Positions 20,182-61,742 of a stretch of DNA of 64,000 nt are shown in pieces. A program made the position numbers and the translations under genes. The stretch spans positions 1 to 64,000 of the forward strand of contig FLMG01003876.1 in assembly GCA_900088475.1 (NCBI GenBank), read 5' to 3'. Positions within the stretch are counted from its first letter, which is position 1. Every line of letters starts with the position of its first letter. The stretch comes from Hyphochytrium catenoides (Eukaryota > Protista > Hyphochytriomycota). The notes beneath the pieces are model-generated. The model saw only the letters and a list, made by a program, of their open reading frames with translations, did no database searches and had not been told where the DNA came from.

Positions 20182-23100
20182 TCACTCCTGAAGGTTTTTC
20201 TCGATCATTCGAGCTAGCTCCACCACCTCATGGGGATACCCCGAGAGCTCGGCGACGTGGATTCCAAAGCTTTTATCAGTAGGACCCGGCGCAAGTTGGT
20301 AGAGTAACGTGAAAGTGGAGGCACCAGTCTCTGCTGCCATGTGAAAGTTCTTTATGCCAGGATGTGTACTCTCCATAGTAGTGAGCTCATGGAAGTGTGT
20401 AGCGATGAAGCAGAAGCATCCGAGATCTTTGTAGATGCTCTCAGTGATGGCGAAGGCCAGTCCAAAGCCGTCATGTGAAGAGGTTCCCCGTCCAAACTCA
20501 TCTATAAGAACGAGGGAAGAGGGTGAGGCGTTCTTAAGAATGGCAGCAATGTCGAGCATCTCAGCCATGAAGGTAGAAATCCCTTTAAACTGATAGTCTT
20601 GAGCCCCGAAGCGTGTAAAGAGACAGTCAAAGATTGGAAGCTCCGCCACTGTACAGGGAACGAAGCTACCGATCTGAGCCATCACCGCGAGAAGCCCTAC
20701 GGTGCGCAGAATGGTGCTCTTCCCACCCTACAGGGAAGTTCAATGGTCAGTTGCTGTTCTGGTTTCCGGGCTCTCTCCAATTCCCTTTCTGGAGTTCTCC
20801 CCTATCACTCTCTCTCTCTCTCTTCTCTTAAACAAGCTACTAAAGCAGGTGTAAGGACTAAAGACTTGGCTCCCATACCATGTTTGGCCCTGTAATGATC
20901 GCTATCCTTGAGTCATCCGTAGAGCAACTAACCGAGTTGGGGATGAAGTGCACCCCGTCCTGTCCTTCAATGCACGGATGACGAGCCAGTTGAAGTTCAA
21001 TTCTCCTCTCTTTTTTCTTGACTGAGGAGGACAGTTGGGGACAGCAATAACCCTGCACTGCCGCAACTTGTGCAAGGGATGAAAAGGTATCGAGGTCGGC
21101 TACGATCGAGGCAGCCTCTTGAAGCGCCTTGGCGTACGTTTGGACCACCTGGAGGCACTTTTGAGTCAGCTTATGTTGAAGCTGAGTGTACTCTTCCACT
21201 GTAGAGCGGTAAGCATGACTCAAGTCTCGCAGAGTCGCCGTAGTAAACAAGGTGCCCGCCTTCTGTATTGAGAGAACTATCAGAGTGTTCCTCTTCTTCC
21301 GCAAAAGAGCCTCATCCTTTTTGGTCAGGCGTAGGTGATAGCCGTATGTTTGATGATTCTCGAGCCGAATGCGATCACTTTCCAGCCCAAGAAGTGTGGT
21401 CACTTCTTCTTTCTCCTTCTCTATCCTTTCCTTCAAGGACAGACGCTTGGTATGTAGAAGAGCAAGAGGATGATAAAAAGTTGGCTTGATAAGGCATAAC
21501 CGGTCCTTGGTATAGCTCTCCAGGTCCACAGCTTCTTGGACCATGGCGTAGAAGCCCTGTAGCTCCTTAGATATCTGCTCCGTCTTTTCCAAGAGTCGAA
21601 CGATAGGACTTGTTCCATCCTCCCCTCCTGCTATGTCGACTGATGTCGCCGATACCGCTTGGCCGAAGGCAACAGTGAGATCAGGAATGCGTATCAATGC
21701 AACGTAGAGTTGAATGACGTCACGTAGGCTCCCCATTCCCTTGCGGATCTTCCACCGCAGTCGATCCACATCAACTAAAGACCTGAGGAACTGGTCTCGA
21801 ATGTAATCTCGTAGTAATGGGCTTTCAACGAAGAACGCTACCACTCGTTGTCGTTCCAAAATGGACGCTAGCGAAGTAAGAGGAAGCTTCATCCACTGCG
21901 GAAAGCAAGGGAAAAGAACATCGAGCGGGAGGTAAGCCAAGATTTGCTAAGGGTCATCCGTAGCGCAGCGTTTCTATGTATGGTCTAGTACCTTAAGCAG
22001 CCGACGAGAACCCATAGGAGTCTTGCATCTGTTCAGCAGCGAGAATAGTGAAATATCTCTACCCGCACCTATGCCAGAGGGGGAATTCTCATGATGAGAG
22101 GATAGATGGTGGCAGTGACGGCTGTGGCAAAGAGACAGCCAGATTACCTCTTTTAGGGCCCGGGAAGATGTTCAGCGACGTGGATGCTGCTTGGTCATAC
22201 CTAACATTAACATTATAGCGTTCGGGTGCGGTCACAGAGGGCAGGAAAGATGAACAGTACTAGCAGAGTTAAAGACCTCATATAGCCTTGCAATGAAAGC
22301 TCTATCAACTCATAGCTGCCCTGGGCCGATGGATTGTCCAGCAAGTCCAAATAGGACAGCAGAGCGGACACTGCAGAGGAGAGAAGACGGGAGCCTCGAA
22401 GTTTCTCGACGGCCAATTTCGTGTCTGATAGCAGCGCCTCGTCTTGGACAGCTAGACAATGTTAGGGCAAAAAGGGGATGAGTGATACAAGGACAAGCAC
22501 AGGCGATATATGAGATCTGATTACCATGGAAAGTCCTGCCAAACAAGAGCATGTCCAGAGGATCACCCGCACCCTGGGGTGAGAAGTCCTTCCTTTTTCT
22601 AGACACGCTAACTATACCACTAGAGTCCATGAGCTCTTTAAGCCTTTGATAGAGGTTGGGTTGATGCTCTAATTGCAAAGGAGAAGAAAGACGTCAACGG
22701 TTGCTTAGCGAAAGGCGTTTCTCCAGCTGTATGAGCGATAGGGTTGGACAGACAAAGAAGGAAAAGCAAGAAGACTGCGCGATAGAGTAAAGAGGCTCTT
22801 CTCAAAGGAGGAACAGTCCGCGAGAGGGATAGGAAGAGCCGGCTACGGCCGCAGGGGTGGAAGCCATCATGGTCTGGCCACGGCGGTGGGAGGTGTTGGC
22901 CTCACCGCTGCACAAGACGCATTCTTTCACGTTAAATTGGTTTAGTGCGCTCCTAAGAAACCCAAAATCTTCCTGGTCTTCAAACTCCATGAAGCCCAGC
23001 GTCTGCTCTACTGTGTGCGCTGCCACCAGCGACAAGCGTAGACTGGTCTCCTTCTCTACCGCCATCAGACTGGCAACAGTGCCATAGGCCGACAAAGCAG

Positions 23101-24514: not shown

Positions 24515-27500
24515 ATGAGACCTCCGCGTGAGGCGCTGCTGCTCACAGCAGGCGTCGCACCGTTAGGATGCCTGTGCTGGCTTTATGGCCATGCCCTTAA
24601 CGTGGCCATTGTACTCTCCGTGGTGGTCTATTTTGGTTCTCTGATGTTTACTCGTTGGACTCGAGCAACCAGGAAGGGCAAACAACTAGCTGATGGCGGA
24701 GAGACACCACTGCCAATCAACTCTGAGGAATGGCTCCAGAGCTCCGCCCCTGTGCAAGGGATACTTGTTCTTTCTCTTCTCTTCTCTTCGCTCTCCGGTG
24801 GCGGACGCACCTTATCTTTATCCTCTACTCTTCTTTGTCTTAGCGGGTTGGTGGCGTCTACGTTTCTGCTCTCGTTTACCTCCCTGACTACTCTGGTCCA
24901 CTGCCTAGCACGTTCACACCTGCAGGGGGCTTTGAATGGCCAAACGAAGTATCCTAGCAGTTTTCAAATGACCCTGCTGCCACTCTTGCCTCTTCTGGTG
25001 ATGCTATCTGGAGGCCTGATACTTGCAGGAATGTCAATCCTGCTCTGTGGGATCGACAGCTCTAGCTACCTGCTCGCGTTGTATCTACTGATTAACCTAT
25101 GGATGGCCCAAGAATCGCCCGTGCTGAAAACATGGTATCGAAAGGGTCAGCAGACACTGTGGGCAATCGGAGATGATCGGACTCTCCGACTCGGGGCTGT
25201 CATGGTTCTCTCAGCACCAGTCGCTCTGGAGCTCCTTCTTCTTCTAACACACTTTGGGTTTCACTTGGAGCTCCTCATACTTCGCTTGCTACCTCTTATC
25301 TGCTTCTTACTCCTCGCTCTAACCGCAATATCTCCTAATGAACCGAGTGCCGTCTTTCGGGTGCCGCTCTATCGCTGGCTCTCCTCTGACTCACAGATGC
25401 TGGTTGTCCGTCGTCTCATGATGTTTCTCCCTTCCGTCCTTTGCGCTTCCCGCTACATTGTCCACCATCTGATCCCTGTCGCTCTAATGGCGGGAGCTAT
25501 CTCCGTAGTAGAGGCTAGCATACTTGCTTCAGGCTGTTGGGCATCTAGCTCTAGGCCGCTTCAACGCCTGAGCGAGGCAGGAGCCCTCTCCATTCTAACA
25601 GGAAGTCTTGCTTTGAGTGGAGGATGGTGGTCACTGTTGGAGGTCTACGTGGGCCTAGCAGCCGGCAATCTGCTGCAGCACATTTGGCAAGACACTAAGC
25701 CTTCATCATTTGACGGAGTCAGAGACTTTCGGCAGCTTGGAAGTCTTGCATTGACAGCCAGCGCATGCCTAGTAATCCCATGGATTGGCAACCTCATTGT
25801 CAAATGGGGAGCTGCAACTGATCTTAGTGAAGCCAACGCCCTCGAATCTTTTCTGATCCTAGGTTTGGAAGGAATTGCCAGCTTGCTGTTCACTTCTGGG
25901 GCGAGATTGGAAGGTTTCTCTGCGGGGTTGGTGACCTTCATGGGGGAGATGGTTCACGTCCGACTGCTGGCATCCAAACAGAACGATGAAGAGTCACCTC
26001 TCTTCCTCTTCTGGGCCCTCCCGTCCTTACTGGTAGCTCTCGCTGCTCTCCAGTGCCAGGTCCTGCATCGCTATTGGAGAGGAAGGTGTTCTTCGTCGCT
26101 CCTTGCACTAGTCACCGCGATAACAGTGTCCCAGTCTCTAGGCTGTCGAGGTAGCAGGCGCTTGAGGTTGGCACTGGGCATTCACATGGCCGTAATACTT
26201 CTGCCTGCGCTATGTTACAAACCAAATCATCTCAAAGACAGCCCTATGGTGTTGGCAGTAGCCTCTCGCTTTGACGATAGAATCCCTGCCAACACTCCTC
26301 TTGTTCTGCTTCATGCCTTGCTCTTTCCCTTGACATCACTCTTCCTGGTCAGGCAAGTGGATGCTGAGCTTTCCAAAGAGCTCATAACCTACTTCCCAAA
26401 GATTTGTTGTGCAGTTTACACCTGTTACATCTTCTTAGCGTTGGGATGGCTGTGCAGGCGATACTTTCCCAGAAAAGTCCTTTTCCTTAGAATTGGAGCT
26501 GGAGCCGCATTGGGCACAAGTCTGATTATTTTGATGGCTCCAGCCCATGAAATGCAGGCCTTGCTGCACTCTGCGACGACCCTAGAGCCTAGCAGCAGTG
26601 GAGACGACAACGCTTGGCAGGACAACGGACTCCAACCGCAATTACTGGTTCGACTGTGGCTCGCAGTTTTAGCAGGTTGCCATGCCCTACTTCTAAGCCA
26701 CTCAATTGCCAAGATGGGTCGGTCAGCTCGATCCGGCGCCTCGCTAGTGCTGTGTGGGCTACAGATGAAGGCCCTACTATCTTTGCTTCCAGTTGAGCCA
26801 TCACTGTCTCTCTTGTTTCTCTCACTTAGCTGGGTAGGCTTGTCTCTGCTCCTCAGTAGTCTGATGGGCCCTGGTGCCATCCTATGGACGGAAGTAAGAG
26901 GACTGCACTTGGCATGGAACGCATTCATTGCACTATCTTTGCTTCTGGTTAGCGAGAGCCCAATAGAAGTATGCATCATGTGCGGGGTTGTGGCTCTGAG
27001 CGGAAATATCCTGGTCATTTTGGTCGCGGGCTGGAGCGTTGCCAGGGCAGAATCCTTGTATACGCGACGCTATAGGGTTGACAGGGACCGCCGGAGCTGG
27101 ACGAAGCTTCATAATATATCCTTGTCATGTATGGCCATGCTCCCAGTCCTTTGGCATGCGGCACAAGCTCTAGAGCAAGCCCTCGTCTCGAGTGGTGCTA
27201 CCAAGTATACCTTCCGTGTTTCCACGTTTCTGGCTGCAGGTTCTCCTTCGCTACTTTACTTTCTCAAACAGGGAAGGCTGAGCGGATTACGAGGTCCTTT
27301 CTCCCGCCTTGCGCCCATCGCCTCGCTAGCCCTATTTCATCTCTCTCTCTCCGCGCTGCTTCATCAGTGGGTGGCTCTGGTGGACGGACTACACCGCTAT
27401 CATGCGATGTTGCCTTTGCTGCTAAGGGTGACCTTCGAGTTTATTTGTTTGGGTCTTGATGTGATGTTGGCCATCAAGAATCTGAAGCACTTTTGGCTGC

Positions 27501-27679
27501 CGAATAGACTGAGATTTTCTTATCGGCAGTGGCTCCGCCAGTGCTCTTTGATGGCCTTGATTGGTTATGTGACAAATTCCTTTGCTACGCGACTGCTTGT
27601 TCTGGGTTCTATGGCTCTTTGGGCCACTCTTGGCTTGCAGAAATGGGCGAAGCGAGAAGAAAAGAGGTTGCTCATCTGA
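24515..27679 (+). CDS. Intronless polytopic membrane protein, NO EXINE FORMATION 1 (NEF1)-like
   Basis: 1054-aa ORF with more than 20 hydrophobic segments. Segments GIDSSSYLLALYLLINLW, LYRWLSSDSQMLVVRRL and RRYFPRKVLFLR...LIILMAP recall plant NEF1 (from memory, not aligned). Confidence 0.6.
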   Translation: MRPPREALLLTAGVAPLGCLCWLYGHALNVAIVLSVVVYFGSLMFTRWTRATRKGKQLADGGETPLPINSEEWLQSSAPVQGILVLSLLFSSLSGGGRTLSLSSTLLCLSGLVASTFLLSFTSLTTLVHCLARSHLQGALNGQTKYPSSFQMTLLPLLPLLVMLSGGLILAGMSILLCGIDSSSYLLALYLLINLWMAQESPVLKTWYRKGQQTLWAIGDDRTLRLGAVMVLSAPVALELLLLLTHFGFHLELLILRLLPLICFLLLALTAISPNEPSAVFRVPLYRWLSSDSQMLVVRRLMMFLPSVLCASRYIVHHLIPVALMAGAISVVEASILASGCWASSSRPLQRLSEAGALSILTGSLALSGGWWSLLEVYVGLAAGNLLQHIWQDTKPSSFDGVRDFRQLGSLALTASACLVIPWIGNLIVKWGAATDLSEANALESFLILGLEGIASLLFTSGARLEGFSAGLVTFMGEMVHVRLLASKQNDEESPLFLFWALPSLLVALAALQCQVLHRYWRGRCSSSLLALVTAITVSQSLGCRGSRRLRLALGIHMAVILLPALCYKPNHLKDSPMVLAVASRFDDRIPANTPLVLLHALLFPLTSLFLVRQVDAELSKELITYFPKICCAVYTCYIFLALGWLCRRYFPRKVLFLRIGAGAALGTSLIILMAPAHEMQALLHSATTLEPSSSGDDNAWQDNGLQPQLLVRLWLAVLAGCHALLLSHSIAKMGRSARSGASLVLCGLQMKALLSLLPVEPSLSLLFLSLSWVGLSLLLSSLMGPGAILWTEVRGLHLAWNAFIALSLLLVSESPIEVCIMCGVVALSGNILVILVAGWSVARAESLYTRRYRVDRDRRSWTKLHNISLSCMAMLPVLWHAAQALEQALVSSGATKYTFRVSTFLAAGSPSLLYFLKQGRLSGLRGPFSRLAPIASLALFHLSLSALLHQWVALVDGLHRYHAMLPLLLRVTFEFICLGLDVMLAIKNLKHFWLPNRLRFSYRQWLRQCSLMALIGYVTNSFATRLLVLGSMALWATLGLQKWAKREEKRLLI

Positions 27680-33129: not shown

Positions 33130-33760
33130 CTTAAAGAGAAAAGATAGGTTCGTCTCGAAGGAAGGAAAGAACAAGGGAGGAAAGAAAAGAGCAAGATCCC
33201 AACGGAGGAGGAAGAGAGTGCAATGAGATGAAGGGGCCAAGTCGCAGGGAAACACTATGAAAAGAGGAAGAGGAAAAGCGGAAGGAGACTCGAAAGGGGC
33301 CAGGCAAGTTCTGGACACGGGCAGAAAGAGAGAGACGGAGAGAGAAAGAGATAGATAATATAAGGAGAGAGAGACAGCGAAAGATAGTGATGGTAGAACT
33401 AAGTGTGAGAGAGATAACAGAAAGAAAGAAAGAAAGAAATGGAAGTGCCAAGACGATGACAGAGCTCCGGGAGAGCCGGCAAGGGGAGAACAAAGTCCTG
33501 CTTTCTATTAGAGACACAGAAGAAACCCACGAGGATCTCATTCCTCGAGAAAGGAGAGAGATTAAGCGGAGCAGTGTGGAAACGGGAACTGAAGAGTGAG
33601 TGAGATGAGAGAGAGGTGTGAGAGAGAGAGAGAGAGAAAGAGCGAGAGGAGAAAAGTCGAGAGAGAAAGAGAGAGAGAGAGAGAATGTAAGGAGAGGGAC
33701 AGAAGCAAGGACGATCCCTAACATTTGTCTTGTAACGGATGGAAGTGGCCGTTACAGTCA

Positions 33761-33792
<32 letters not shown>

Positions 33793-34135
33793 GCGCGCTC
33801 TTCCCCTCTAGTTCTCCCTCACCCTCTGTCTCTGTCTCTCTCTCTCTCTCACTTTCTCAGCAGTGTGCCACGGTTCTACTCGAACAATGTACTTGGTTCG
33901 TTTCTTGCCCGCTCTGTCTCAATCCTTCTCCTCTCACCTTCTGCTTTCAACCTCGGCATTCAGAAACACCAGCTGCCTCTTCCTTCCACTTGTTCCAAAT
34001 CATATGCTTTTTCTCTCTCTTTGCTCTCTCGCGCTTTCACCCTGCTCTCTCTCTCGCCTCCCTCTCTCTCTCTCTCTCTCCCTCTCCCTCTCTCTCTGTG
34101 TATGTGTCACATCTCTATCGCTCTCTCTTTCTTTC
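33130..34135. repeat. Polypurine (GA-rich) tract ~33130-33712 abutting a polypyrimidine (CT-rich) tract ~33761-34135, with (GA)n/(CT)n microsatellites
   Basis: Composition read directly. The overlapping ORFs (RERE.../SLSL...) are repeat artefacts. Confidence 0.9.
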
Positions 34136-35105: not shown

Positions 35106-38100
35106 ATGAGAAGAGGCAAAAAGGTTGTCACTTGTCCTCCCGCAAGAGGGCTCGAGGACTCGCCAATCGTGTCAAGTCAAAGGCACCTTTTTCTACCGAT
35201 TATTATCCTTGCTTGTGCCTGTTTCTCTTATGTCCCTGGTGTCGCTGCCATCTCGCCCTACTTCGGGACCAATACCTGTGGCGCCACCACGACCATCAAG
35301 TTTGCCCAGTCTTCTGATCAATCTGGCGCGCTCTCAGCCATTGGTATTGGCATGCGCTTAGGCATCGAAGCAGCATTCAAGGAAGTGAATAACTCTGGCG
35401 GCGTCAGAGGTCTCTACTTCCAGTTAGACTCCAAGGACGATGTCTACAATCCCGTTAACGCGAGCAAGAACGCCATGACTTTTACCAATCAAAGTGACGT
35501 CTTTGGGATGATTGGCTGGGTCGGCACAGCTAACGCTGAGGCTTCTCTGCCCGTCATTCTGCCCACTGGGATGCCCTTCATTGGCGTGTTTAGTGGAGGG
35601 AACCAAGTCCTGCGTGAGCCTTATAATAGACAGATTGTCAACTTCAGGCCCTCGTATTTGGACGAGACGGCAACCATGGTCGAGTACCTGATAAATGTTA
35701 GGAGGTTCTCCCGCATAGCCGTCCTCATGCAAAATGACTCCTTTGGAGAAGCTTGCAAAGAGGGCGTCCGGCTCGCACTGGAGTCCAACAATCTTCGTAT
35801 CCATAGCGAGGGTCGGTATGCACCGAGAACAACGGCGATAGAGCCTGCTCTGAAGATCATTACGGAGTCTGAGGTGATGCCGGAGGCTGTTATCGTGGCA
35901 GGAATTGCGGATCCTAGCGCATACTTTATCCAGCAAGCGAGCAAGGTTCTCCCAAGAGAGACTATCTACATGGTGCCATCCGTCGTTGCTCAAGCTTTCG
36001 TGGATATTCTGATGAAAGCCCCTGCAGACAGTCGTCCTGTGATGGAGAATATCATCGTCACGCAAGTCGTTCCCTTGCCTTATAACACTTCCTTGCCGAT
36101 CGTCTCTCGATACCAAGCCGCTCTCCGTCTAGTCAACTCCACCATTCCGTTTGACTTTTCCTCTCTAGAAGGCTACCTCGTCGGAAGGATGGCAATCGAT
36201 ATCGTTCGTAGGCTAGGGACCAATTATTTTACTCGGGAGATGTTTCTTGAAGCCGCTTATGACTCGGGATCTTTCAACTTTGATGGGCTTCGCTGTGGGC
36301 CCCTGCTGCCAAAAGAAGTCAAAGAAGGATGCAATGTTTGCATGAGAACCGTCGCAATGACGACGATCTCTCCTCAAGGCACTTATCAACAACTGCTCGA
36401 TCAGCCTGACTTGCGCTTTGAGACCTGCGGCTACCGAGCCAAGGTCTGGACCTTCTTGAAGTTTGGCCAGTCTGCGGCAATGAAAGGCTCACGCTCCAGC
36501 ATTCCTGTATCCTTCAATGCAGGTATCCGCGCCGCTTTTCAGGATGTGAATGACCGCGGAGGACTTCTTGGCATTAAGCTTGACATTGTTGCGAAGGATG
36601 ACAAGGACGATCCCACCATTGCCCGGCAGAACATCCGTGAATTTGCTAATGATTCTTCCATTCTAGCCATTGTAGGCTCTTCGCTCTTATCATCTCAGCT
36701 TTCTAAAGAGGCACTTTTGGCAGCTAAAGAGGTGGGCTTGCCCTTCGTGGGTTCTCCTTCAGGCGGCCTCTCTCTACGGAGCCCATTTGACCGTCACGCC
36801 ATCAACTTTCGGGCCTCGTACTTTGACGAGGCAATGGCGATGATAACCTTCCTCTACAAAGTGGAGAACATCACAAGGGTCTCAGCTGTCTTTTCAGATG
36901 ACAGTTTAGCCTTAGAAGGCAGAGACCTGGTGGCTGCTGCATTATCTTCAAAGAGACTGACTCTCTACACTGAATATAGCTTCAGTTCGCAACCTGCGGA
37001 CATCCCGACAGCCATAGCTGGGCTGGAAGGCGGTGAGGGAGCACCGCAGGCAGTGGTAATGATTGGTCCAGTGCAACTTCTCGGGTCTTTCGTTAAGCAA
37101 GCAAAAGCGAAGTGGAAAGAAAATGTCTGGTACTTGGCATTCTCCTCAGTCAACGCAGAAGAATTTGCTCAGACCTTAGCTCTGGGACTGCCTGGCAGCT
37201 CAGAGAGTGAGCCATTGATTTCTCAGAATGTCCTCATCGCTCAGGTTGTCCCACTGCCCACGGATACTAATCTTAAGGCCGTTCGGTCCTTCCAAGGAGC
37301 TATGCGACGATTAGACAAGGCTGCACCACTAAACTCTGCAGCGTTTGAAGGCTACTTGACTGCTTCCATGCTCATTAACGCCCTACAACGCTTAGGCGGA
37401 GAATTCAACCGTCCTGAGAAGCTCCTGGATGCCTTCTATGACTCTGGATCCTTCTCTATGGAAGGCGTACACTGTGGGCCCTTGCTGTCAGAGACTGGCG
37501 CTGATGGTGCAGGAGGCGAAGGCGGCGGCTGTAACCAGTGCATGAAGAAGGTTTGGTTAGCCGCTGTGGACCAGAATGGGTCTTTATACTTTAATCCAAA
37601 AGGAGAACACTCCTTCGAAGCTTCTTGTGGATCTCCTGTCGTTCCTAATGCGGACTTCAAGCTCGGAAGCGCCCGATTGGCCGTGGTGGTTGTCGCTGCA
37701 TTCCAGGTCTTCCTCACTTTAGTGCTGATGGCTCTTCTTTGCTACCATCGGCACTACATCCTCATTCGGGGCAGCTTCCGCTTCAGCTTGGTTACGTGTC
37801 TAGGCGGAGTCCTGTGCTATAGCGTGATCTTTGCTATGTATCCAATCCCTACCGACGCTGTCTGCCTTGCTCAGCCCTGGATTGGACACCTATCGTTCTG
37901 CTTTATCTTTGGTCCTCTCTTCGCGAAAACGAGGCGTGTAGCAATGATCTTTACTAACAAGAAGCTGTCCAGAGTCCTCATCACAGATGCACAGGTGATG
38001 GGGTTCTTCGCGGGTATTCTGCTCTTCTACCTGCTCCACCTCTGTATTTGGACAGGTTTAGATCCTCCCAGAATGGTGGAGGCCATAACTTCAGAGCAAA

Positions 38101-38612
38101 CTCCTCATCGCTACGAAGACTGCGCCTCCACTTACAGTTGGGGCCCATGGGGAATCGTGGTGGTTGAAGGTCTTATGCTTCTATGGGGCTGTCTGCTATG
38201 CTTCAGGGTCCAAGGGGTCAATGGCAAGTTTCAAAGGTTCAATGAGAGTCGGCAAATTGGCTTTGCAATCTATAACACGAGCTTCTTAGGCGCTTTGCTC
38301 ATCTTTCTCACGTTCATCGACTTCCATCCGAACGATGACTTCATCCTGACATCTACATTCATCATGATGAACACCACCGTGGTCCTCGTGGTGCTATTCG
38401 GAAAGCCTGTGTATTTTGCCGTCACAGGTGTCTCCATCACGGAAGCGCAACTCGCTGGAACTTCCGCTACGACCGGCCAGACTGAGGGAAGTGCCAACAA
38501 CAATGCCAGCAAGAAAGAGGGGGCCACGGCTCCCAAGGCTTGGAGTGCTCGGGACAAGAATCCGAAGCCGTCGGCGTCCGTTCAGCCCGTAGACCAAATC
38601 GCTCACCAGTAG
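35106..38612 (+). CDS. Class C (GABA-B-like) 7TM GPCR with two tandem type-I periplasmic-binding (Venus flytrap) domains; intronless
   Basis: Signal-like segment LFLPIIILACACFSYVPGVAA. Two homologous repeats (KFAQSSDQSG...GIEAAFKEVNNSGGVRG...DDVYNP...NFRPSY / KFGQSAAMKG...GIRAAFQDVNDRGGLLG...DDKDDP...NFRASY). 7TM with CLAQPW, LFAKTRRV..IF, FNESRQIGFAIYN, VLFGKP. ATG 35106 preferred over the ORF-track start. Confidence 0.9.
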   Translation: MRRGKKVVTCPPARGLEDSPIVSSQRHLFLPIIILACACFSYVPGVAAISPYFGTNTCGATTTIKFAQSSDQSGALSAIGIGMRLGIEAAFKEVNNSGGVRGLYFQLDSKDDVYNPVNASKNAMTFTNQSDVFGMIGWVGTANAEASLPVILPTGMPFIGVFSGGNQVLREPYNRQIVNFRPSYLDETATMVEYLINVRRFSRIAVLMQNDSFGEACKEGVRLALESNNLRIHSEGRYAPRTTAIEPALKIITESEVMPEAVIVAGIADPSAYFIQQASKVLPRETIYMVPSVVAQAFVDILMKAPADSRPVMENIIVTQVVPLPYNTSLPIVSRYQAALRLVNSTIPFDFSSLEGYLVGRMAIDIVRRLGTNYFTREMFLEAAYDSGSFNFDGLRCGPLLPKEVKEGCNVCMRTVAMTTISPQGTYQQLLDQPDLRFETCGYRAKVWTFLKFGQSAAMKGSRSSIPVSFNAGIRAAFQDVNDRGGLLGIKLDIVAKDDKDDPTIARQNIREFANDSSILAIVGSSLLSSQLSKEALLAAKEVGLPFVGSPSGGLSLRSPFDRHAINFRASYFDEAMAMITFLYKVENITRVSAVFSDDSLALEGRDLVAAALSSKRLTLYTEYSFSSQPADIPTAIAGLEGGEGAPQAVVMIGPVQLLGSFVKQAKAKWKENVWYLAFSSVNAEEFAQTLALGLPGSSESEPLISQNVLIAQVVPLPTDTNLKAVRSFQGAMRRLDKAAPLNSAAFEGYLTASMLINALQRLGGEFNRPEKLLDAFYDSGSFSMEGVHCGPLLSETGADGAGGEGGGCNQCMKKVWLAAVDQNGSLYFNPKGEHSFEASCGSPVVPNADFKLGSARLAVVVVAAFQVFLTLVLMALLCYHRHYILIRGSFRFSLVTCLGGVLCYSVIFAMYPIPTDAVCLAQPWIGHLSFCFIFGPLFAKTRRVAMIFTNKKLSRVLITDAQVMGFFAGILLFYLLHLCIWTGLDPPRMVEAITSEQTPHRYEDCASTYSWGPWGIVVVEGLMLLWGCLLCFRVQGVNGKFQRFNESRQIGFAIYNTSFLGALLIFLTFIDFHPNDDFILTSTFIMMNTTVVLVVLFGKPVYFAVTGVSITEAQLAGTSATTGQTEGSANNNASKKEGATAPKAWSARDKNPKPSASVQPVDQIAHQ

Positions 38613-41547: not shown

Positions 41548-44500
41548 ATGGCTGACCAAGCTGAAGACAGGGCAGCTGGGATGGCTGAAGTTCAGACCGA
41601 GCTTCAGACCGCGGAGACCGTGCTCAGCTACCTCGCGGCTGTGTATGGCGAGCGTGTTGATGCCGAAATACCTCTGCATCTCATCCAAAACTGCCGCGAA
41701 AAGGTGGCGCAGATGTCGAGTGTTTCTACTGCTGGAGCTTACTCTAGTCCCAAGGTGATAACTGAGCTTCTTGAGAACTTGTCCGGTGCCATGGACTACG
41801 CACTCGACCATCCTGTAGACCTGTACAAGTCTCTGGAGCTGGACCGGTGCTTCAAGTTAGGGTCTTCTGGAGAGACGAGCGAAGACGAAGGAAAGGATGT
41901 TAACATTGCTTATCTGGGAAGGGAAGATCTTCTTAGCTCCTTCGCTGAGACGAAGAGCTCTGAAATCATTGACTTACTGCTCGAACGGTGCTCCATGGTG
42001 AGAAGCCTGTTGGACCAATTAAAGACGGTAAGACGACGTCCATAAAGATGCGCCCGCGAGGTGGTGGCAAGAGCCTCATGACGTATTCTGCAGGAATGGC
42101 GCGCCACTAAAGAAAAAGAGCCTGTTCTACAGCTCTTATCAAGCTCCAAGCTCACTTCCCTCTCAGAAGAGCTGTATACAGCCTCAGAAGGGATCAAAGA
42201 GATTATTCAACGGCTTCTTCTCTCGTCAGTCTCTCTCCTGGAGGAAGGCAAAGACGTTTTAGCCGTTGCAGGAGATGCACACGGACTAGGTTGGGACGGT
42301 GCTATGGCTTCCGCTTCTACTTCTGAGGAGTCCCACTCGCCGCCAAACCAAAACAAGCTTCAGAATAAGCAAAGTATGAGTGAAGAAGATAGAAAGCTTG
42401 AGAGGGAGGAGCCTTCTTCGGTTAGAGTAAGTGAGGATGCTAACAAATTAGAGGAACAATCACCCGCTGACGTCCTCTCCTCATTGGTTTCTATGTCTTC
42501 CGCCGAACTATGTCAGCATACTCCATCAAGAATGGCTGAAGAAGCGCATGCGCAAGTGAGCTTGGTAACGTCAGACATCGAAACAGTAGAGCATGAGGAA
42601 GTCACAGCTGAAGCTGGTGGCGCAGCAAAAGGAGCAGGAGACGAAGACGGATTGAGAGGCGCCGAAGTAAGGCATGCAGATGACGCAGTATCACCTTCTA
42701 TCTCACCCGGCGAACACCTCCAAGAGGACGATATTGGCGGCATAGCCAACGTACTAGGAACCTCTTCTGCGATTGTTGATGCTGTCACTCTAGGTGACGA
42801 GGCGCAAAAAGATCAAACTCAGCATTCAAAGGAAGATAACCTACTGCCATCGCAAAACTCTCTGGCGGTCTTTAGCATGCCCGATGGCAGAGAACCCGAA
42901 GAGAGGCAGGCAGAACAGATAGAGGGGAAACGGGACGTTTTGGCCGCTTCTTTCCTTCCCGCCTCTCGGTCTCCGATGGCGGTGGAGCAGTCAGTCTTGC
43001 TGCTGGAGAAGCAGATCTCTGAGGAAGTAGCGGCAGAGACGGTAGAGCACATTTTCTCAGAGGCTGGGGCTAGCCAGAGTGGAGTATGTGAGAAGATGAA
43101 GGAGGCAACGGAACAAAGTCATCAAGGAGAACATGATCAAGGTTTCCCACCAATCCAAGTCCAAGGCATAGCGCCAAATAACAGGTGCGAGAGCTCCGTA
43201 TCAGGGGACACGGATGAGCCAACACCCTCTCCCGACGAGCAGCTGGATGTCCAAGAGGATAAGAGCCGAACGGGTGAGGGGAACCCGAATGCAGCAGGTA
43301 TGGAAGAGGGACAGCGCGTGCTCGTCAGCGCCAAGGGAGAGAAGGCGTCCTCTGCTGCCGAGTCTGAAAGGATTGACGTGGAGGTGGAAAGCCCGGCTTC
43401 CAACACAATTGAAGCTTCCGTGAGGCCGACAGTCAACGCCAAGGCTGTAGAAGACAGTAGATCCCAGACCACACATGACCCAGTACTCTCGACTAGCTCA
43501 AGCCTGGAGACCAAGAAAGTGATATGTTTACCAGAGAATTTATCAGAGAGCACTGTGGAGATGCCCGGCACTCACTCTGGCTACGCGGCTGCTCTTACGG
43601 ACCACAGTGTGTCTCTAGTCCTTACCTCTAGAGAGGTTAATATTGCCCTCTCGAGCCAGAAAGAGGAGATGTCAACCTTAGCAGAAGATACTGATAAACC
43701 GGCACTTGAACGAAAGGAGCAGACCCTCCCGATGACAAATTGCGAGTCTGGAAAAGAGCAAAGAGGAGGAGAGGCAGATGAGAAAGGCTCAGTTCGCCAT
43801 AGCCCAACACTGACTTCTGAGACAAGAGAAGAGTCAGGCTCCACCAGCACCAAGGATCACTCTACGATACCCATTGAGATACAGACAAAAGTTGGGAAAG
43901 AACCGACGATAGCTCTCGTGGGCATCACTGAGTCACTCGCAACTCGAGCAGAGACAGTGAAAGCAAGCAGCTCTCTACCTAGCTCATTTGTGTCCTCGCA
44001 GAGTGGTGGCGCGGATAAGCCCTCTCCCACTTTGACTCTTTCTTTGCAGGACAAAGATTGCATGCCATCTTTAGCTGTGTCGACTGCCTATAACTCCTCC
44101 TCGCCCAAAAACCTCCCAGGTCCTCAGCCCAAAGCTGCAGGGACGCAACCCGCTGTCCCAGCTGGAGCCGAGGCTGTCTCCACCGAGGTTTTCTCCCTTG
44201 TTGAGGAGCTCAAAAGAAAGGAAGAGGAGGACCAGAAGCGGAAGAAAAGACAAGAAGAAGAAGCTCTGCGACGCAAGAAGCAGAAGGAGGAAGAGGAAAA
44301 AGAGAATCAGCGACGTCAAGAGGAAGCCAAAAAGCAGGCTGAGGAAGAGGCGGCAGCTGCGGCAGAAAGAGAGCGTCTGGCTTTGGAAGAAAAGAAGGCA
44401 AAGGAGGAAGAAGTACTGCGCCAGCTCGAGGAAGAAAAGAGAGAGAGGCTCCGAGAAGAGGAGGAGCACCTCAGAAACTTACAGCAGCAGTTGGACGCCC

Positions 44501-46635
44501 AAATCGCTGCGGAAAGTCTTATCGGAGAAGGGCTGAAAGACAAGGTAGCACGGGAACAAACACCTTTGTCCCAGAGGCACCGACGAACAACACTGATTAG
44601 AAGGTCGGTCAGCTGTTCTCATTGCTTCCAAACCTTAGGCCACTCTCTCCTTTAGTCACACTCCACTCAGAATCCTGAGTCTAATTATGGCGCTGTTTGC
44701 CTGGTGTTGCAGCAAGAAGTCAGTAGCTGTGCAGGATTTGACGGTGGTTGGCTGGAGGCGGTTGACGGTCCAGCAGGAGCTAGAAGTCTTTGGCTCTGTA
44801 TGGGAAGCAGCCCGGAAAGGCTCATCCGTGGGGGCCTTCAGAGTGCTTCTCTCGGTATACTGCTTGCTGCTACCAACTCCAATAGTCCCCTCGCTTCTGT
44901 TCTACCATCTGTATGTCTTCTTGAGACCTTTCGTTTGATCTCTGCAGCTGAATGACTGTTTTGACCTTCCACTGCTATCGATCATTGCATAGCGGCTTTG
45001 GTTAGTTCCCTTCGTCTTGCTGTTGACTGGGCTTTTGAATATTAGCCACTTGTTCTCCCACTTTTCGTTCCCCGGAAGATTGAGATTTGTGGTGCTGGTG
45101 CTTGTAGCAAGAGATCCGGGGATGTACCATCCAGGAAGGTAGAGAATTTCACATCGATGAACGAGATCGAGTCACCGGCGAGAGACTGCTGCAGCTTGCA
45201 AGCTGGTGTGGGCATACGGTGCGATTGAAGAGTCTTTGCACGCTTGCACGGCCTCTGAGCTGCCCTACTTGAGTCTACCGAGTTTCCTCTTACAACTCCT
45301 ATCTTCACCATGTGATCATTATTTAGTACTTTCCGCTCATTCTTTGAGCATCTCTTTAACTAATCCCCATGTTTCCGCCTCTAACGTCTTTCGATTTCCC
45401 ATAAGCTCGATGTCCTGACAAGCACATACTTCCTTATTCTGACCCCTGCATCTGATTATCTTTGGGACCATTGGTGGTCAATTGGTTCTACAGGAGCTTG
45501 TTCGTTTCCTGGTGGAGGAAGCAGGTGCCAGCGTAAATTTAGTAGACGGCACCGTGAACCGACTCACGCCATTGCATGACGCCGCCCGAGGAGGCTGGGC
45601 AGATATCGTGGAGATTCTGCTGCAGGCGGGGGCACAAGTCGATGCTTTAGATTCTGGCGGGGATACAGCGCTGCACTGGTGAGAGAGTCGGTCTCAAGCT
45701 CCATATTTTATCCCACCCAGTCGCTGTCCTGAATATCTGCTCTGAGGACTCTCCCTTCATTAATAGCGTGCGTCCGTTCTCCGTATCCTATCGCCCACTT
45801 TTTGGCATCTACTCCTGAATAACGATGACATGTGACATCCTAGGGCTGCGCGAAGAGGTAATCTAGCGGTGGTCAAGCGAATGTTGCAGTGCTCGGCCAC
45901 TTTATTCACAGACCATGAAGGTATCAACAAAGCAGCATCACTTCAAGACGTGAACCTAGTTCTCCCTCTAACCTACTCTATTAGAGCTAAGGGCGTATTG
46001 CGCTGAATGTCGCTTTTCTTCTCACTCGGCCTTACTCTGACCATGTCCTTCTCTTTCGCTCATCCTTATCCACATGTTCCAGGCCGTAAGGCGGTATGGC
46101 GCATGCTTGGCACTCGTAATGGGAAAGGGAAGCTGCCTTTCGAGTTAAGCACGAAAGAGAGCATCCGGGAGACGATTTTGGAGTACGTAGTAACGCTTTC
46201 CAAGAAGGAACAGGACGAGGCCCAGCTTCACAGTCCTGCCACCGTAAAGAAGAATCTTTATGCCATTAGGTAAGCATGTGGTTTACCTCTGTCAGAACAA
46301 CTCGGCCGTCCGGTTAACCCTTGCAAAATAGCTTCAAGGACTACGGAAAGATCAACCGACTGGTGTCCCATACTATGCCCACATATCCTACCTCCCCATC
46401 TTACTTGGAAGCGGCAGAGGAAATTCTGCACTTTGATTCGCCGTATAGCACTGCGTACAGCATGATATCTCACACGTTCAAACGCTCTCGCACGAAGGAC
46501 AAGAGAAGTGATTTATTGAAAGGTGGGAGAAGACGGTCCGGGATAACGCGGAAGCTGAGTAGGCTACCGCAGAGCTTTCGCAGTGTAAACATGAACCAAT
46601 TGGCGGAATTAGAGCAGCGCCAGGCGATCCAGTAA
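41548..46635 (+). CDS. Large protein: long acidic/Ser-rich disordered region, E/K/R charged helix, C-terminal ankyrin repeats
   Basis: Exons 41548-42027, 42093-44543, ~44776-44844, 45493-45678, 45844-45920, 46083-46270, 46332-46635. Ankyrin motifs LTPLHDAARGG and GDTALHW|AARRG. Confidence 0.7.
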
Positions 46636-50801: not shown

Positions 50802-51830
50802 TCAATAACTTGGATAGGCTGTCAAATTTTGATCCAACTTCACTGGTGAGATGACTTGAGGGCTCCAGTCCACGGGAATGGCGACAGGAACTTCGTATGG
50901 CTCTGGCTGAGCAGGCGGCGACTGAAGGATCTGAATAGGGAGCTCAAGAGTTGGCTTGAAGGTGCCCAGACGAAGCTTAACTTCCACGTGATAGCTGCAC
51001 CTAAAGTTATGGATTTCTGGACCCGTACTAGGAACAAACCCATTTTGTCCATCTGGAGGAGCAACCGGAAGCTGCAAGTCGCAGCTCTTCGATTCTCCAG
51101 GCTGGATTAGTTCGTCAGTCTCGACGTACGAACAGACAAATGTGGAGGTCTCAGAATGGCCGTGGGCTCGGAACTCCATCCGGCACACGAGGCTGATCTT
51201 GATGCCCTTTGCCTTCAAGCTAGAGTTATTGCGAGCTTCGACATGCACCTGTAGCTGCTCGTTGTGAGTATAGGTGTCCGTGAGAAGACTGGCTAGAAGA
51301 AACCCTGAACCCCTGGTAAGGCAGCAGTATTCCTTAATAATTTCTGTACACTCCGATGCAATAGGCCTCGGCGGTGCTCCTGTCCTTTGGCTAATGACGC
51401 CAAATGACATCTTTGACTTGATATCCGATCGAAACATCCCTTTGACGTCACAGATCGCCTTCATTTTGTAGGTAACTGAAGCCTTCTTGTTGGGTCTGGA
51501 GATACAAAGGGAACTGGGGAGGTCTGGCGGCAGACAGAACTCAAAGTTCACCTGATAACTCCCAGGCATAAGCGTTCCTCTAGGCGTAAAGAGTGGAATC
51601 TGAACCTTCAAAATGGTGCGCTTAGCTGTATAAGTCTTTCTCTCAGTCTTCCCGTCATGGGTCACTTGGCGACTTATCTCTACAGCTTCAACACCTTTGA
51701 CTCGGAGGTAAACCACATGTGCTTCTAAGGGTTTGCCAATCACAAGGGCTACAGTCCCTCTCACAATCTCCCCCGCTACATAGACAGTCTTCTCAGGAGC
51801 AATGAGCAGAGAAGAGTCCGAATTTCCCAT
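50802..51830 (-). CDS. Arrestin-fold (alpha-arrestin-like) protein, intronless
   Basis: YVAGEIVRGTV, LRVKGVE, LMPGSYQVNFEFCLPPDLPSS, VTYKMKA (Arrestin_N); FVPST, CSYHVEVKL, LELPIQI (Arrestin_C); Pro-rich tail. Start MGNSDS at 51830. Confidence 0.9.
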   Translation of the reverse strand: MGNSDSSLLIAPEKTVYVAGEIVRGTVALVIGKPLEAHVVYLRVKGVEAVEISRQVTHDGKTERKTYTAKRTILKVQIPLFTPRGTLMPGSYQVNFEFCLPPDLPSSLCISRPNKKASVTYKMKAICDVKGMFRSDIKSKMSFGVISQRTGAPPRPIASECTEIIKEYCCLTRGSGFLLASLLTDTYTHNEQLQVHVEARNNSSLKAKGIKISLVCRMEFRAHGHSETSTFVCSYVETDELIQPGESKSCDLQLPVAPPDGQNGFVPSTGPEIHNFRCSYHVEVKLRLGTFKPTLELPIQILQSPPAQPEPYEVPVAIPVDWSPQVISPVKLDQNLTAYPSY

Positions 51831-52769
51831 CTTGGCCACAGAGATTCGTTCCCTGCGACGAAGAGTTTACCGACTACACTCCAAGTGTGGGTCAAGCGGG
51901 AAGTATGGCGATTCACTCAAAGGGGGTTGTTGCCGGTTTGGAACTCAACAGGGTAAAGCGCCATCAGCGGGCCATGACTAGCTCCTTTCGAGCTCCTTTC
52001 GATAGTAGCACTTGAAGACTGGACATGCCAACACCTTGCACACGGAAGCTGCTGAGTCTGCTCGTGCCGGATGCTAGATACACTTACCGTGGGATAAGAT
52101 GCAGCAAGTTAGCTCCCTAAACGCACACCCGTAACCACCACCAACACGCTAGATTCTGGCGCCTGTCTCTCGCACTGACCGAGTTGACTGTTCTTGGTTC
52201 CCTTCTTCTTGGCTAAGACTCTTGGCTCTTCTGCATGTGCGATCTTTCCTGCTGCTTCCGTCCCTCACATCCTACATCTTCGTCCCATCCTTCAACATGG
52301 TCCATCCTCCTCCTCCAGCGTCAACGCAAGTGTTGCCGATCTTCTAACTCTGCTTGTCCGTTTCTCCCTAGAACCTGGAAGATGACAATGACAATCCATC
52401 AGAAGTTCAATTTTTCCCAAGAAATGTACGATACCCGAAGACAGGGGTTCCATGATAACTGAATACTGATAATCGGCTAGGTTGGAGAAACGAACGCAGT
52501 GAGCTGAATGATGATGTCTCAGAAAGATATGTCCGGAAGGGCAAGAGGTCCAAGACTAGTCAGGTGCACATAAGTCTAAGGATCTATGAGAGGATAGACC
52601 ATCTGCTGCTGGTCCCATCGCTCACTTGGTCGCTCACTTGTTCGGAGGAGGCTTTACCAGCGTCTCTGCAGTGCCAGCGACTGCTTAAGGACTCTCGGTG
52701 GCCAGCGGGAGTGGACAACATTTTCCTGGTGACGGAGATGAAGGTGGGCTTTAAGCTTTAAACCGTGAA

Positions 52770-59700: not shown

Positions 59701-61742
59701 GCAACAAAGGAGGCCTGCATTAGAAAATAGAGAATGACGTTGCTAACCTTCATAGAAGTCGCCATTTGCGGACTCCAGCTTCCCTTTCCCAGTCAGTTTC
59801 CCATTCTGGAACTCGCCCACAAACCGCTCACCACTGGGAAAACGAAGCTCTCCGATGCCATGCTTCACACCATCCTCCCACTTTGTGAGGAGAAAAAGAG
59901 AGATCCAGTTTGCCCGTAAGTGCAGGCCGAAAGACGTAAGGGCGAACACAAGGTATGTAATGGTATGGAGGGTCAATGGCTGTGACATGGAGACAAAAGA
60001 AGTAAACAAGGCCACATTGCATGTGAAGAAGGTCATCGAATATCTAGGGATCATGAGGCTGTGCGAGAAATAGCGCCAGGCCCCAAGGTCGTGAGAACTT
60101 ACCTGCCCGATGTAAGTGACTCCGTCAACCCGGCACAAGACTCCTCTCCCATGTCTCTTGTCGCTTCGCCATTCGCCAGTATACTTAGAACCATCTGCGT
60201 AAGTCATTACCCCTTCACCGTGACATTGTCGACCCTTAACCTCTCCTTCATAAACAGCACCCGAAGAATATGTCTTTCTTCTCAAGGCAGGCTTGCCATC
60301 TTCATCTTCCGCTTTCTCATCCTTCAATAGCGGTGAATCTTCTTGTCCGTTTGCCTCAATTGTAGAACTCATCCACGATTGATGCAGCGAACCCATTGAC
60401 GTAGAGGGCAAGAGGGATGACAGAGCTCCCAACATGCTTGCTTGGTTGTCTCCTCTTTCTGTAGCGTTACCTTCCTTGCTCCGGTATAATGGTGAGAGAA
60501 CGGCCTCCGCACCACGGTAGAACTTACGGATAGCCTTCTTTGGCACTTTTGCGCGTCCATATACTTTCATGGCTGGCACCGGGCTCTCCCTCAGCTCGAT
60601 ACTGTTCTTCTTGTCCTCGCTACTCACGGTGGGTGAGTCCAAGGTAACGGAGTTCCCCAGGAGGTTTCCATTTTCCGTTAGATTATTTCCACATACAGAG
60701 CAGCGAGGGTAAACAAGTGAGTTGTTCTTATGGTGACAAGCATCGCACCACCAGCGATGGGCGCTGACTTTGTGCACGTTGGCTCCTACGAAGAGGGAAG
60801 GCAAGAGAAATTTAAAAGAGTTATGCGTACTTATACAGTCTTGCTATGACAATTATTGGCAGGTGAACCGAAGGGCACAAGGCCGAAGCAGCGCGAGCTT
60901 GCGGAAGGGGGCCAAAGGACATTGAGAATGTAGCAGTTTACCTGTAGCGCTGTCAAAGGTAAGTTCGCAGCCCGGCCAGGTGCATCTAAGAAAGTCCTTA
61001 TAGCTAGATGGAGGGTCCCATTGAGTGTCTTTAGTCGCCTCCTGGTAGTAGTAAAGTGCGCCTGTGTGCTCATCATAGAGCTCACTCCAGCCGCCTAGAG
61101 ACCTGACAACGTGTGATCGCTTTAAGAGATCTTTAAGGGCTGCCTCAGTTACCACGACCTTCTGCCTCTTCCTCCTTTCAAGCTTGGCAATGATCCGTCC
61201 CAGAAAACCCCTAGCAACTCTTTGCAGGGTTAGAGTTGCCCTGTGCCTTGTAATGGCCTGAGATCCAAGGTTAGAGACCAAGTGAGCACGGTAGAGATAC
61301 TAGCACCACGACATCATAAGGAGTAGTAGAAAGGTAACTAGCAGAGCATCGTCGATAGTGAATGATCCTAGTCGGGCTATGCAGCGGGACGTATATCCGA
61401 GAAGATAAAGAATCGTCAAACAGCAAATAGCAGGCTAATTCTCTTCCTCCGAAGGTGTGTCTGACCAACAAGAAGTGAGGCTTGCGAGGAAGAAGGGAGG
61501 AGGTATATATATATCGTTTAAGCTCACGTTCGTACCTCTCGGTATAGTAACAGCTGTCGCCTGCCCCTATAGAGAGCTTGAATAATGGCTGCAGCAGCAT
61601 AGATCAATTTGTCGTCTTTCTTCAACTCATTCGTAGTAACTGCGGCCAGCTGAATATGAGCGGCGCTAATCTTAGAGGTTTTTGCTTCGAGCTCCTTCCT
61701 GGCTCGGACCCTTGCCGCCCGACGATCAAGCGCTAAGCTCAT
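56717..61742 (-). CDS. IQ / WW / C2H2 / RanBP2-zinc finger / MORN-repeat protein
   Basis: IIQALYRGRRQ and LQRVARGFLGR (IQ); GWSELYDEHTGALYYYQEATKDTQWDPP (WW); CTWPGC-x12-H-x4-H across an intron; WWCDACHHKN..YPRCSVC; more than 20 YxGxWxxxxxHGxG MORN repeats over many exons. Confidence 0.85.

Follow-up and report, generated by a model that had tools for sequence, protein, structure and literature searches.

A probable GABA-B-like class C receptor with two tandem LivJ-type Venus-flytrap domains in Hyphochytrium catenoides

A single open reading frame on contig FLMG01003876.1 of Hyphochytrium catenoides appears to place two Venus-flytrap (VFT) domains in series in front of a seven-helix membrane domain, which raises the question of what kind of receptor it encodes and how this architecture arose. 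The analysis was carried out on a window of 64,000 nucleotides, i.e., the whole stretch of DNA examined, to which all positions refer. A first-pass annotation, made from the sequence alone, had described a signal peptide, two homologous repeats and a GABA-B-like seven-transmembrane (7TM) domain, and this description was borne out by the open frame, Pfam, hydropathy and the AlphaFold2 model. The features are collected in Table 1.

Table 1. Features of the receptor locus, with positions in the window and the basis of each assignment
Feature	Position	Strand	Basis
Complete single-exon CDS, 1168 aa + stop	35106-38612	+	Open frame, first ATG; AlphaFold2 model confident in all three domains
Predicted N-terminal signal peptide or signal anchor	35106-35249	+	Charged n-region, hydrophobic core aa 28-46, small residues at about aa 45-48
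VFT1, membrane-distal Peripla_BP_6 / LivJ-type clamshell, aa 56-444	35271-36437	+	Pfam, phmmer, Foldseek
VFT2, membrane-proximal, more diverged second clamshell, aa 445-845	36438-37640	+	VFT1 identity, Pfam, pLDDT
Class C seven-helix domain (7tm_3), aa 857-1107	37674-38426	+	Pfam, GABA-B2 match, model helices
Cytoplasmic tail, Ser/Thr/Ala-rich, disordered, aa 1108-1168	38427-38609	+	pLDDT <50 for aa 1118-1168
AG/TC dinucleotide microsatellites	33593-34097		Tandem Repeats Finder; about 1 kb 5′ of the start codon

The frame starts with an in-frame ATG at 35106, ends with the stop codon at 38610-38612 and contains no internal stops, so that the encoded protein of 1168 aa comprises, in this order, the signal peptide, VFT1, VFT2, 7tm_3 and the cytoplasmic tail. 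Hydropathy peaks at 2.2 in aa 28-46, and the N-termini of the paralogs described below are similarly hydrophobic. The predicted signal peptide would be cleaved near the small residues at aa 45-48, and the N-terminus behind it would be extracellular. Structure prediction, a check suggested in the first-pass annotation, resulted in a full-length AlphaFold2 model with a mean pLDDT of 87.1 that contains two clamshells and seven helices. No Rfam matches were found in the window.

The gene had also been described as intronless in an intron-rich neighbourhood. The first part holds and applies likewise to the three paralogs, whereas the second is only partly apt, as further long uninterrupted ORFs of 1045, 1054 and 783 aa are located in the same window. 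The genome mean is 3.64 introns per gene (PMC5795050).

A profile search recovered all three expected families, Peripla_BP_6, ANF_receptor and 7tm_3. Peripla_BP_6 (PF13458) reached 205 bits in two stretches and passed its cut-off, with ANF_receptor at 62.8 bits; in VFT1 the Peripla_BP_6 stretch covers aa 63-394, and the second Peripla_BP_6 / ANF_receptor stretch falls in VFT2. The two flytraps share 32% identity across 379 residues (E 4e-70), a similarity far beyond chance. Furthermore, the end of VFT1 is formed by a short beta-hairpin that carries Cys397, 409 and 412, to which a segment with Cys790, 809 and 812 corresponds in VFT2. The pLDDT of VFT2 is mostly >90.

The best solved relative of the flytraps is 4kv7, a binding protein of Rhodopirellula baltica, with a phmmer E-value of 1.5e-39 for VFT1 and an alignment spanning residues 17-340 of the 381 in the chain. 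Foldseek target TM-scores of 0.88 against 4kv7 and 0.89 against 3lop were obtained, both with the type I two-lobe fold. LivJ itself (1z15) aligns with the N-lobe alone (E 5e-4), and the LivJ and urea-binding matches in NCBIfam are weak and sub-threshold. The comparison with animal flytraps rests on sequence searches of solved structures and on Pfam scores: in the former, VFT1 and VFT2 matched bacterial proteins only and no animal flytrap at E<=1, and in the latter Peripla_BP_6 far exceeds ANF_receptor. The earlier statement that the repeats are nearer to bacterial LIV-type ABC binding proteins than to animal VFTs is in agreement with both. Among the 65 conserved positions of the bacterial subfamily, 53 are kept in VFT1 and 38 in VFT2. 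The trypanosomatid-cyclase-type flytrap profile PF25493 scored 24.0 bits for the query protein, which is under the cut-off of 27.2.

For the membrane domain, 7tm_3 (PF00003) scored 134.1 bits against a cut-off of 33.5 at aa 857-1099, and hydropathy and the model agree on seven hydrophobic helices between aa 855 and 1107. The best solved match is GABA-B2 (E 9e-21); the HMMER alignment matches the TM3/ECL2 cysteines, the motif FAKT.RV..IF.N.K at the end of TM3 and N[ED]S..IG..YN in TM6. The functional roles of these cysteines and of the basic TM3-end and acidic TM6 motifs are established for class C receptors. With 7tm_3, seven helices, a type I flytrap and the conserved motifs, the protein is a class C (Glutamate / family 3) GPCR. 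A cysteine-rich NCD3G domain between flytrap and 7TM is a feature of the mGluR / CaSR / T1R subgroup. No Pfam match to NCD3G was found in the protein, and the gap from Cys841 to TM1 is only about 15 residues; by this feature the receptor would be placed outside that subgroup. Pfam likewise detected no GBR2_CC coiled coil, and the tail is disordered in the model. Class C receptors are constitutive dimers that activate a heterotrimeric G protein, and at least two G-alpha loci are present in the same genome, of which one has an open frame without interruption (364.7 bits).

In total, four tandem-flytrap 7tm_3 paralogs including the query were identified in the genome, all with uninterrupted ORFs, and two of them exceed the PF25493 cut-off of 27.2 (34.5 and 33.9 bits). 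Class C members of the PBP_like_2 type are present as well. The only close homologue, P0001, was dropped as a candidate orthologue from a second species because, with 99% identity to paralog C2594, this sequence is a conspecific copy of that paralog. The two conspecific copies of C2594 have a pN/pS of 0.15, which shows purifying selection on this paralog.

Relatives in other eukaryotes were retrieved by an exhaustive protein search, as the word-index search was nearly blind (4 matches for the full length, 1 for the 7TM). The same flytrap type with 7tm_3, in one, two or three copies, was found in Ceratiomyxa, Clastostelium, Amoeba proteus, two species of Paulinella, Lobulomyces and Clydaea. Tandem flytraps combined with 7tm_3 occur, besides the query, in Amoebozoa, Paulinella and chytrids, i.e., in three other eukaryotic supergroups. 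Tandem flytraps were also found on other partners, namely a cyclase (P0022 carries the catalytic domain), Ephrin_rec_like repeats and, in one protein, a TRP-like region that matched weakly and under the cut-off. The Clastostelium protein P0023 passes the PF25493 cut-off with 53.5 bits. The earlier view of an undescribed system peculiar to this locus was not supported, given the four paralogs and the same design in amoebozoans, Paulinella and chytrids.

The explanation that is considered likely as a whole is a functional plasma-membrane GABA-B-like class C receptor with tandem LivJ-type clamshells, one of four paralogs. It builds on the domain order, the folds, the class C hallmarks of the 7TM, the G-alpha genes of the genome and the purifying selection on a paralog. 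The distal VFT1, which keeps most residues of its bacterial relatives, would be the main small-molecule sensor, with an amino-acid-like or organic-acid nutrient or cue as a guess at the ligand. The diverged, proximal VFT2 may bind a second ligand or pass the closure of VFT1 on to the seven-helix bundle; hardly any linker separates it from TM1, an arrangement shared with GABA-B receptors. The bundle would in turn activate a heterotrimeric G protein; the receptor most likely acts in dimeric form, as do the rest of class C. The flytrap itself would come from an ancient eukaryotic line of Peripla_BP_6-like sensor modules, which were put to repeated use on GPCRs, cyclases and further membrane proteins. 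The tandem copy in this lineage would date from an internal duplication that preceded the divergence of the four paralogs.

The arrangement of the two flytraps allows for another reading, which we regard as unlikely: VFT1 and VFT2 could pack as an intramolecular pseudo-dimer, so that the receptor works as a monomer or carries the GB1/GB2 division of labour fused in one chain. In GABA-B receptors, the GB1 flytrap binds the ligand and the GB2 flytrap is non-binding, and the combination of one conservative and one diverged flytrap recalls this pair; the near absence of a linker between the domains points in the same direction. In type I binding proteins, however, the chain begins in lobe 1 and finishes in lobe 2, and judging from this fold topology a head-to-tail stack seems more natural than a side-by-side pair. 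When VFT1 and VFT2 were co-folded as two chains, the score was 0.05 (mark 0.34), which counts neither way on pairing. A similarly low probability is assigned to an activation geometry distinct from that of all studied class C receptors, in which the distal ligand-binding flytrap would act on the diverged proximal flytrap in cis, as a fused GB1/GB2-like or BvgS-like relay, maybe without the canonical flytrap dimer, and in which several protist lineages would have arrived at the design separately, each through an internal duplication.

The first-pass annotation had favoured an independently assembled receptor: this lineage would have taken up a bacterial binding protein of the branched-chain-amino-acid type, doubled it and joined it to a eukaryotic 7TM that it already possessed, independently of other class C ectodomains. 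The exclusively bacterial matches among solved structures, the lack of introns and the identity of up to 40% between VFT1 and bacterial single-domain binding proteins, which is above the 32% between VFT1 and VFT2, would fit such an origin. The flytrap domain trees, drawn from the 150 best matches to the query, without animal, diatom and Dictyostelium flytraps, argue against it. All eukaryotic flytraps in them fall outside a single clade made up of the bacterial binding proteins (98* in one tree, 100/94 in another), and neither VFT1 nor VFT2 is sister to any bacterial sequence. Together with the same fusion in three other supergroups, this makes an independent import and fusion very improbable.

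The duplication, in contrast, may indeed have been independent. VFT1 and VFT2 of all four paralogs fall in one clade (94/95) and are each other's nearest relatives, a grouping by lineage that would fit the acquisition scenario as well. A single origin of all second flytraps received p 0.024 in an AU test for which the group was named after the tree had been seen. In the other lineages the second flytraps have long branches, and the bootstrap of the tree is not fully settled. The internal duplication thus looks specific to the Hyphochytrium lineage, and because of the post hoc AU group, the long branches and the unsettled bootstrap, gene conversion between VFT1 and VFT2 could mimic this pattern.

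That the ORF is not a working receptor at all and represents a decaying paralog or a G-protein-free signaller, e.g., a nutrient 'transceptor' or scaffold, would suit an expanded family and is nevertheless highly improbable in view of a 3.5-kb frame without a stop, the retained class C motifs, high pLDDT in all domains, a pN/pS of 0.15 in a sister paralog and G-alpha genes in the genome.

To our knowledge, the mechanistic understanding of class C receptors rests wholly on dimers of chains with a single flytrap each. Having two or three serial flytraps and a spread over at least four eukaryotic supergroups, the present natural family can be used to test how closure of a clamshell reaches the seven-helix bundle. 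Its sensor domains are modular and, owing to their closeness to bacterial binding proteins, may lend themselves to expression and screening. In Hyphochytrium, the tandem-flytrap family and the PstS-type paralogs together constitute a large chemosensory repertoire that is still unstudied. Should the ligands be nutrients, bacterial-style solute recognition would be wired directly to G-protein signalling in an osmotrophic protist.

Non-metazoan class C GPCRs were surveyed by Krishnan et al. 2012 (PMC3251606), by de Mendoza et al. 2014 (PMC3971589) and for the Grl receptors of Physarum and Dictyostelium (PMC10445921). According to the available text of these surveys, 7tm_3 is combined with ANF_receptor, Peripla_BP_6, PBP_like_2, BMP, OpuAC or similar domains in N-termini of up to 1667 aa. 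The receptor described here follows the general principle of these 'Glutamate family' GPCRs, a 7tm_3 bearing a periplasmic-binding-protein ectodomain. Two or three tandem flytraps on one class C chain are not stated in the same survey text, which does not cover Hyphochytrium, and GPCRs are not mentioned in the Hyphochytrium genome paper (PMC5795050). When the literature was searched for class C receptors with tandem or double flytraps, the only matches were the bacterial BvgS, EvgS and CdgH; in the papers found, it is these proteins to which the terms 'tandem Venus flytrap', 'tandem VFT' and 'two Venus flytrap domains' are applied. A class C receptor with tandem flytraps was not described in any paper found. 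Varied binding-protein ectodomains on non-animal class C receptors are already known from the surveys.

Like the BvgS and EvgS sensor kinases and CdgH, the receptor has distal and proximal binding modules in series before a membrane-spanning signalling domain. In these bacterial proteins the flytraps have the type II binding-protein fold and are coupled to histidine kinases or diguanylate cyclases, and the resemblance would be functional only. With the bacterial LivJ-type ABC binding proteins (4kv7, 3lop) the flytraps share the fold, with a near full-length alignment between 4kv7 and VFT1; those proteins are soluble single-domain transport components, whereas in the Hyphochytrium receptor the domain occurs twice, has additional cysteines and precedes a 7TM signalling domain in the same chain.

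GABA-B (GB2, GB1) provides the nearest solved 7TM. As in GABA-B, the flytrap joins TM1 directly without NCD3G and the TM3-end and TM6 motifs and TM3/ECL2 cysteines align; Foldseek aligned about 730 columns with the full-length GABA-B chains. Unlike GABA-B, each chain has two flytraps instead of one and lacks the GBR2 coiled-coil tail. In the solved-structure search only the 7TM matched GABA-B chains, with no detectable sequence match between the GABA-B flytraps and those of the query, and the receptor is not a GABA-B orthologue.

The first-pass annotation had pointed to the trypanosomatid receptor adenylate cyclases as a case of tandem VFTs, which is correct, as these carry two extracellular flytraps (PMC6027212). 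Like the Hyphochytrium receptor, they are eukaryotic membrane receptors in which two type I flytraps stand in tandem, and paralogs and relatives of the query pass the PF25493 cut-off. The effector differs, being a single-pass cyclase in the trypanosomatids and a 7TM in Hyphochytrium.

The tandem-flytrap receptor of Hyphochytrium catenoides is encoded by an uninterrupted frame, and the architecture proposed in the first-pass annotation, with a signal-like segment, two homologous repeats and a 7tm_3 domain, was confirmed by Pfam, self-alignment and hydropathy. Peripla_BP_6 was assigned to two stretches of the ORF (205 bits) and ANF_receptor reached 62.8 bits. The membrane-distal flytrap (VFT1) and the membrane-proximal flytrap (VFT2) share 32% identity across 379 aligned residues (E 4e-70), and the helices of the seven-helix bundle are visible in the hydropathy profile. 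A Cys-Gly is located just before each repeat (C58, C441) and a third ahead of TM1 (C841), while three cysteines in a short beta-hairpin segment close each repeat (C397/409/412 in VFT1, C790/809/812 in VFT2). The receptor contains neither the mGluR/CaSR-type cysteine-rich domain NCD3G nor the GABA-B coiled coil. Due to the absence of NCD3G, VFT2 reaches TM1 via about 15 residues, which resembles the linker of GABA-B receptors.

Features of the receptor and its surroundings (nt, window positions; aa, residues of the receptor)
Feature	Position	Strand	Remarks
Ankyrin-repeat protein	nt 16876-20013	+	1045 aa
MutS domain III/IV exon	nt 20858-21940	-	
Long uninterrupted ORF	nt 24515-27679	+	1054 aa; no Pfam family at E<=1e-4
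AG/TC dinucleotide microsatellites	nt 33593-34097		three, long, 42-49 copies each; ~1 kb upstream of receptor gene
Receptor ORF	first ATG nt 35106, stop nt 38610-38612	+	1168 aa
Signal-like segment	aa 28-46		hydropathy
Flytrap repeat 1 (VFT1)	aa 56-444		Pfam, self-alignment
Flytrap repeat 2 (VFT2)	aa 445-845		Pfam, self-alignment
7tm_3	aa 857-1099		Pfam, 134 bits
Long uninterrupted ORF	nt 42304-44655	+	783 aa; no Pfam family at E<=1e-4
Arrestin_N + Arrestin_C ORF	nt 50802-51839	-	344 aa; ~12 kb downstream of receptor
MORN-repeat protein	nt 59743-60804	-	

The full receptor was modeled with AlphaFold2 from an input alignment of 50 sequences, resulting in a mean pLDDT of 87.1 and a pTM of 0.63, with low confidence limited to the leader at the N-terminus and the final 50 residues. 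The top Foldseek match was the Rhodopirellula baltica binding protein 4kv7 (target TM-score 0.88), followed by full-length GABA-B chains (around 730 columns aligned) and then by mGlu receptors. For the 7TM domain, the closest solved relative by sequence is GABA-B2 (E 9e-21), ahead of mGlu7, GABA-B1 and GPR158/179. In the alignment to GABA-B2, the motif at the end of TM3 (FAKTRRV..IF.NKK against FAKTWRVHAIFKNVK), the TM6 motif (NESRQIGFAIYN against NDSKYIGMSVYN) and the cysteines of TM3 and ECL2 are kept. The receptor displays the computationally testable features of class C membership. G-alpha proteins are encoded in the same genome, one of them at an uninterrupted locus (364.7 bits).

The genome (4759 contigs, 61.0 Mb) was searched for related genes. 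The design of two Peripla_BP_6 domains and 7tm_3 was found in four paralogs, namely the studied gene and those on contigs C203, C3894 and C2594, all with uninterrupted frames. The C2594 copy is broken by an N gap in this assembly; its complete form is present in a Logan assembly (run SRR28521206; L011:1083-4598 versus L015). The Logan protein P0001, the sole "close homologue", was rejected as evidence of a second organism, since it is 99% identical to that of C2594 and therefore a conspecific copy. The two copies differ by 23 synonymous and 11 non-synonymous changes in 968 codons (pS 0.033, pN 0.005, pN/pS 0.15). This ratio, the 3.5-kb open frame, the confident folds, the class C motifs and the paralogs indirectly support a live receptor gene. 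A distinct 7tm_3 clade in the same genome carries ectodomains matching PBP_like_2 (PstS phosphate-binding type), with two matching stretches in some members (contigs C3424, C4239, C2629, C2457 and C1638; loci L012, L013, L014, L017 and L026). Another, tight clade with about 560 aa of N-terminal sequence comprises genes on C3702, C2229, C788 and C3832 (loci L019-L024), three copies being grouped on C3832; in C3702, the member scanned, no ectodomain family was detected with Pfam at E<=1e-4.

Among solved structures, VFT1 matched bacterial binding proteins only (4kv7, 1.5e-39; 3lop, 1.6e-19; LivJ, 5e-4) and no animal flytrap even at E<=1. An exhaustive homologue search of 1.84 billion representatives revealed 8799 matches at E<=0.001, of which 334 reached E<=1e-30. 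Single-domain proteins of about 380-440 aa are 36-40% identical to VFT1, and those with a traceable source are all bacterial, coming from a Thermodesulfobacteriota MAG and from megabase-sized contigs. Both searches therefore uphold the earlier statement that the repeats are nearer to bacterial LIV-type binding proteins than to animal flytraps.

Flytrap-domain trees were calculated from the best 150 matches, a quick one with 133 domains and a careful one with 60 domains, in which the bootstrap was unsettled and long branches are involved. The VFT1 and VFT2 domains of all four paralogs fall into a single clade (SH-aLRT 95-96 in quick trees, 94/95 in the careful tree), and the second flytraps from amoebozoan and other proteins occupy other positions, on long branches. 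When all second flytraps, a group chosen post hoc from the tree, are constrained to be monophyletic, the tree loses 48 log-likelihood units (AU p = 0.024). For these reasons, the tandem state most likely results from an internal duplication in this lineage that predates the split of the four paralogs. Gene conversion between VFT1 and VFT2 could yield the same tree picture as such a duplication. A recent lineage-specific import of the flytraps from bacteria is argued against, as neither VFT1 nor VFT2 has a bacterial sister sequence in either tree. Single-domain proteins from bacteria are united in one clade (98* with 133 domains, 100/94 with 60 domains), which in the larger tree also includes kinase-fused proteins and giant arrays of four to seven Peripla_BP_6 domains (P0006, 3020 aa; P0015, 2821 aa; P0034, 1845 aa) nested on a long branch; all sampled flytraps linked to GPCRs, cyclases or Ephrin repeats are found across the branch from this clade.

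Outside this genome, the best 150 of the 8799 matches include flytrap-7tm_3 proteins in which the number of flytraps ranges from one to three, the nearest relatives from other species being 22-37% identical. Such proteins occur in Paulinella chromatophora and P. micropora (three flytraps), Ceratiomyxa fruticulosa, Clastostelium recurvatum, Amoeba proteus and the chytrids Lobulomyces angularis (KAJ3390371.1) and Clydaea vesicula (KAJ3226582.1, annotated in UniRef as [quoted passage not shown]). Tandem flytraps of a related kind are also joined to a cyclase catalytic domain (P0022) and to Ephrin_rec_like repeats, as in P0021, which has an additional TRP match under the Pfam cut-off (25.5 versus 28.5 bits). 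With four paralogs and these proteins in Amoebozoa, Paulinella and chytrids, the receptor is peculiar neither to this locus nor to this lineage. Of the independent assembly from a bacterial import proposed in the first-pass annotation, the bacterial-like, duplicated flytraps are retained, and the independent import is made unlikely by the trees and the wider occurrence.

The two flytraps were compared at 65 alignment columns selected by conservation alone (shared by 80% or more of 40 bacterial relatives). Of these columns, 53 are retained in VFT1 and 38 in VFT2; Tyr114, the Gly140-Thr141 loop and Gln209 are among those lost in VFT2, which keeps the N.R.SY..E and EGY motifs. This asymmetry agrees with a distal VFT1 acting as a conservative sensor and a diverged proximal VFT2 that may bind something else or pass the signal on.

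[quoted passage not shown] In the running text of the open literature, no description of a class C receptor with flytraps in tandem was found. The receptor represents a variant of the class C architecture that is so far uncharacterised and is recorded in databases from several groups of protists. Its tandem-flytrap design is relevant to class C receptor activation, a new mechanism not yet being demonstrated by these data. Non-metazoan Glutamate-family GPCRs have N-termini of 57-1667 aa with ANF_receptor, BMP, LysR_substrate, PBP_like_2, OpuAC or SBP_bac_1 domains (Krishnan et al., 2012, PMC3251606), both conserved and species-specific 7tm_3 architectures are noted (de Mendoza et al., 2014, PMC3971589), and Peripla_BP_6 and PBP_like_2 are among the domain labels of an amoebozoan survey (PMC10445921). 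A literature search on tandem, two or double flytraps yielded no sensors other than bacterial BvgS, EvgS and CdgH. Two flytraps are described for trypanosomatid receptor cyclases (PMC6027212).
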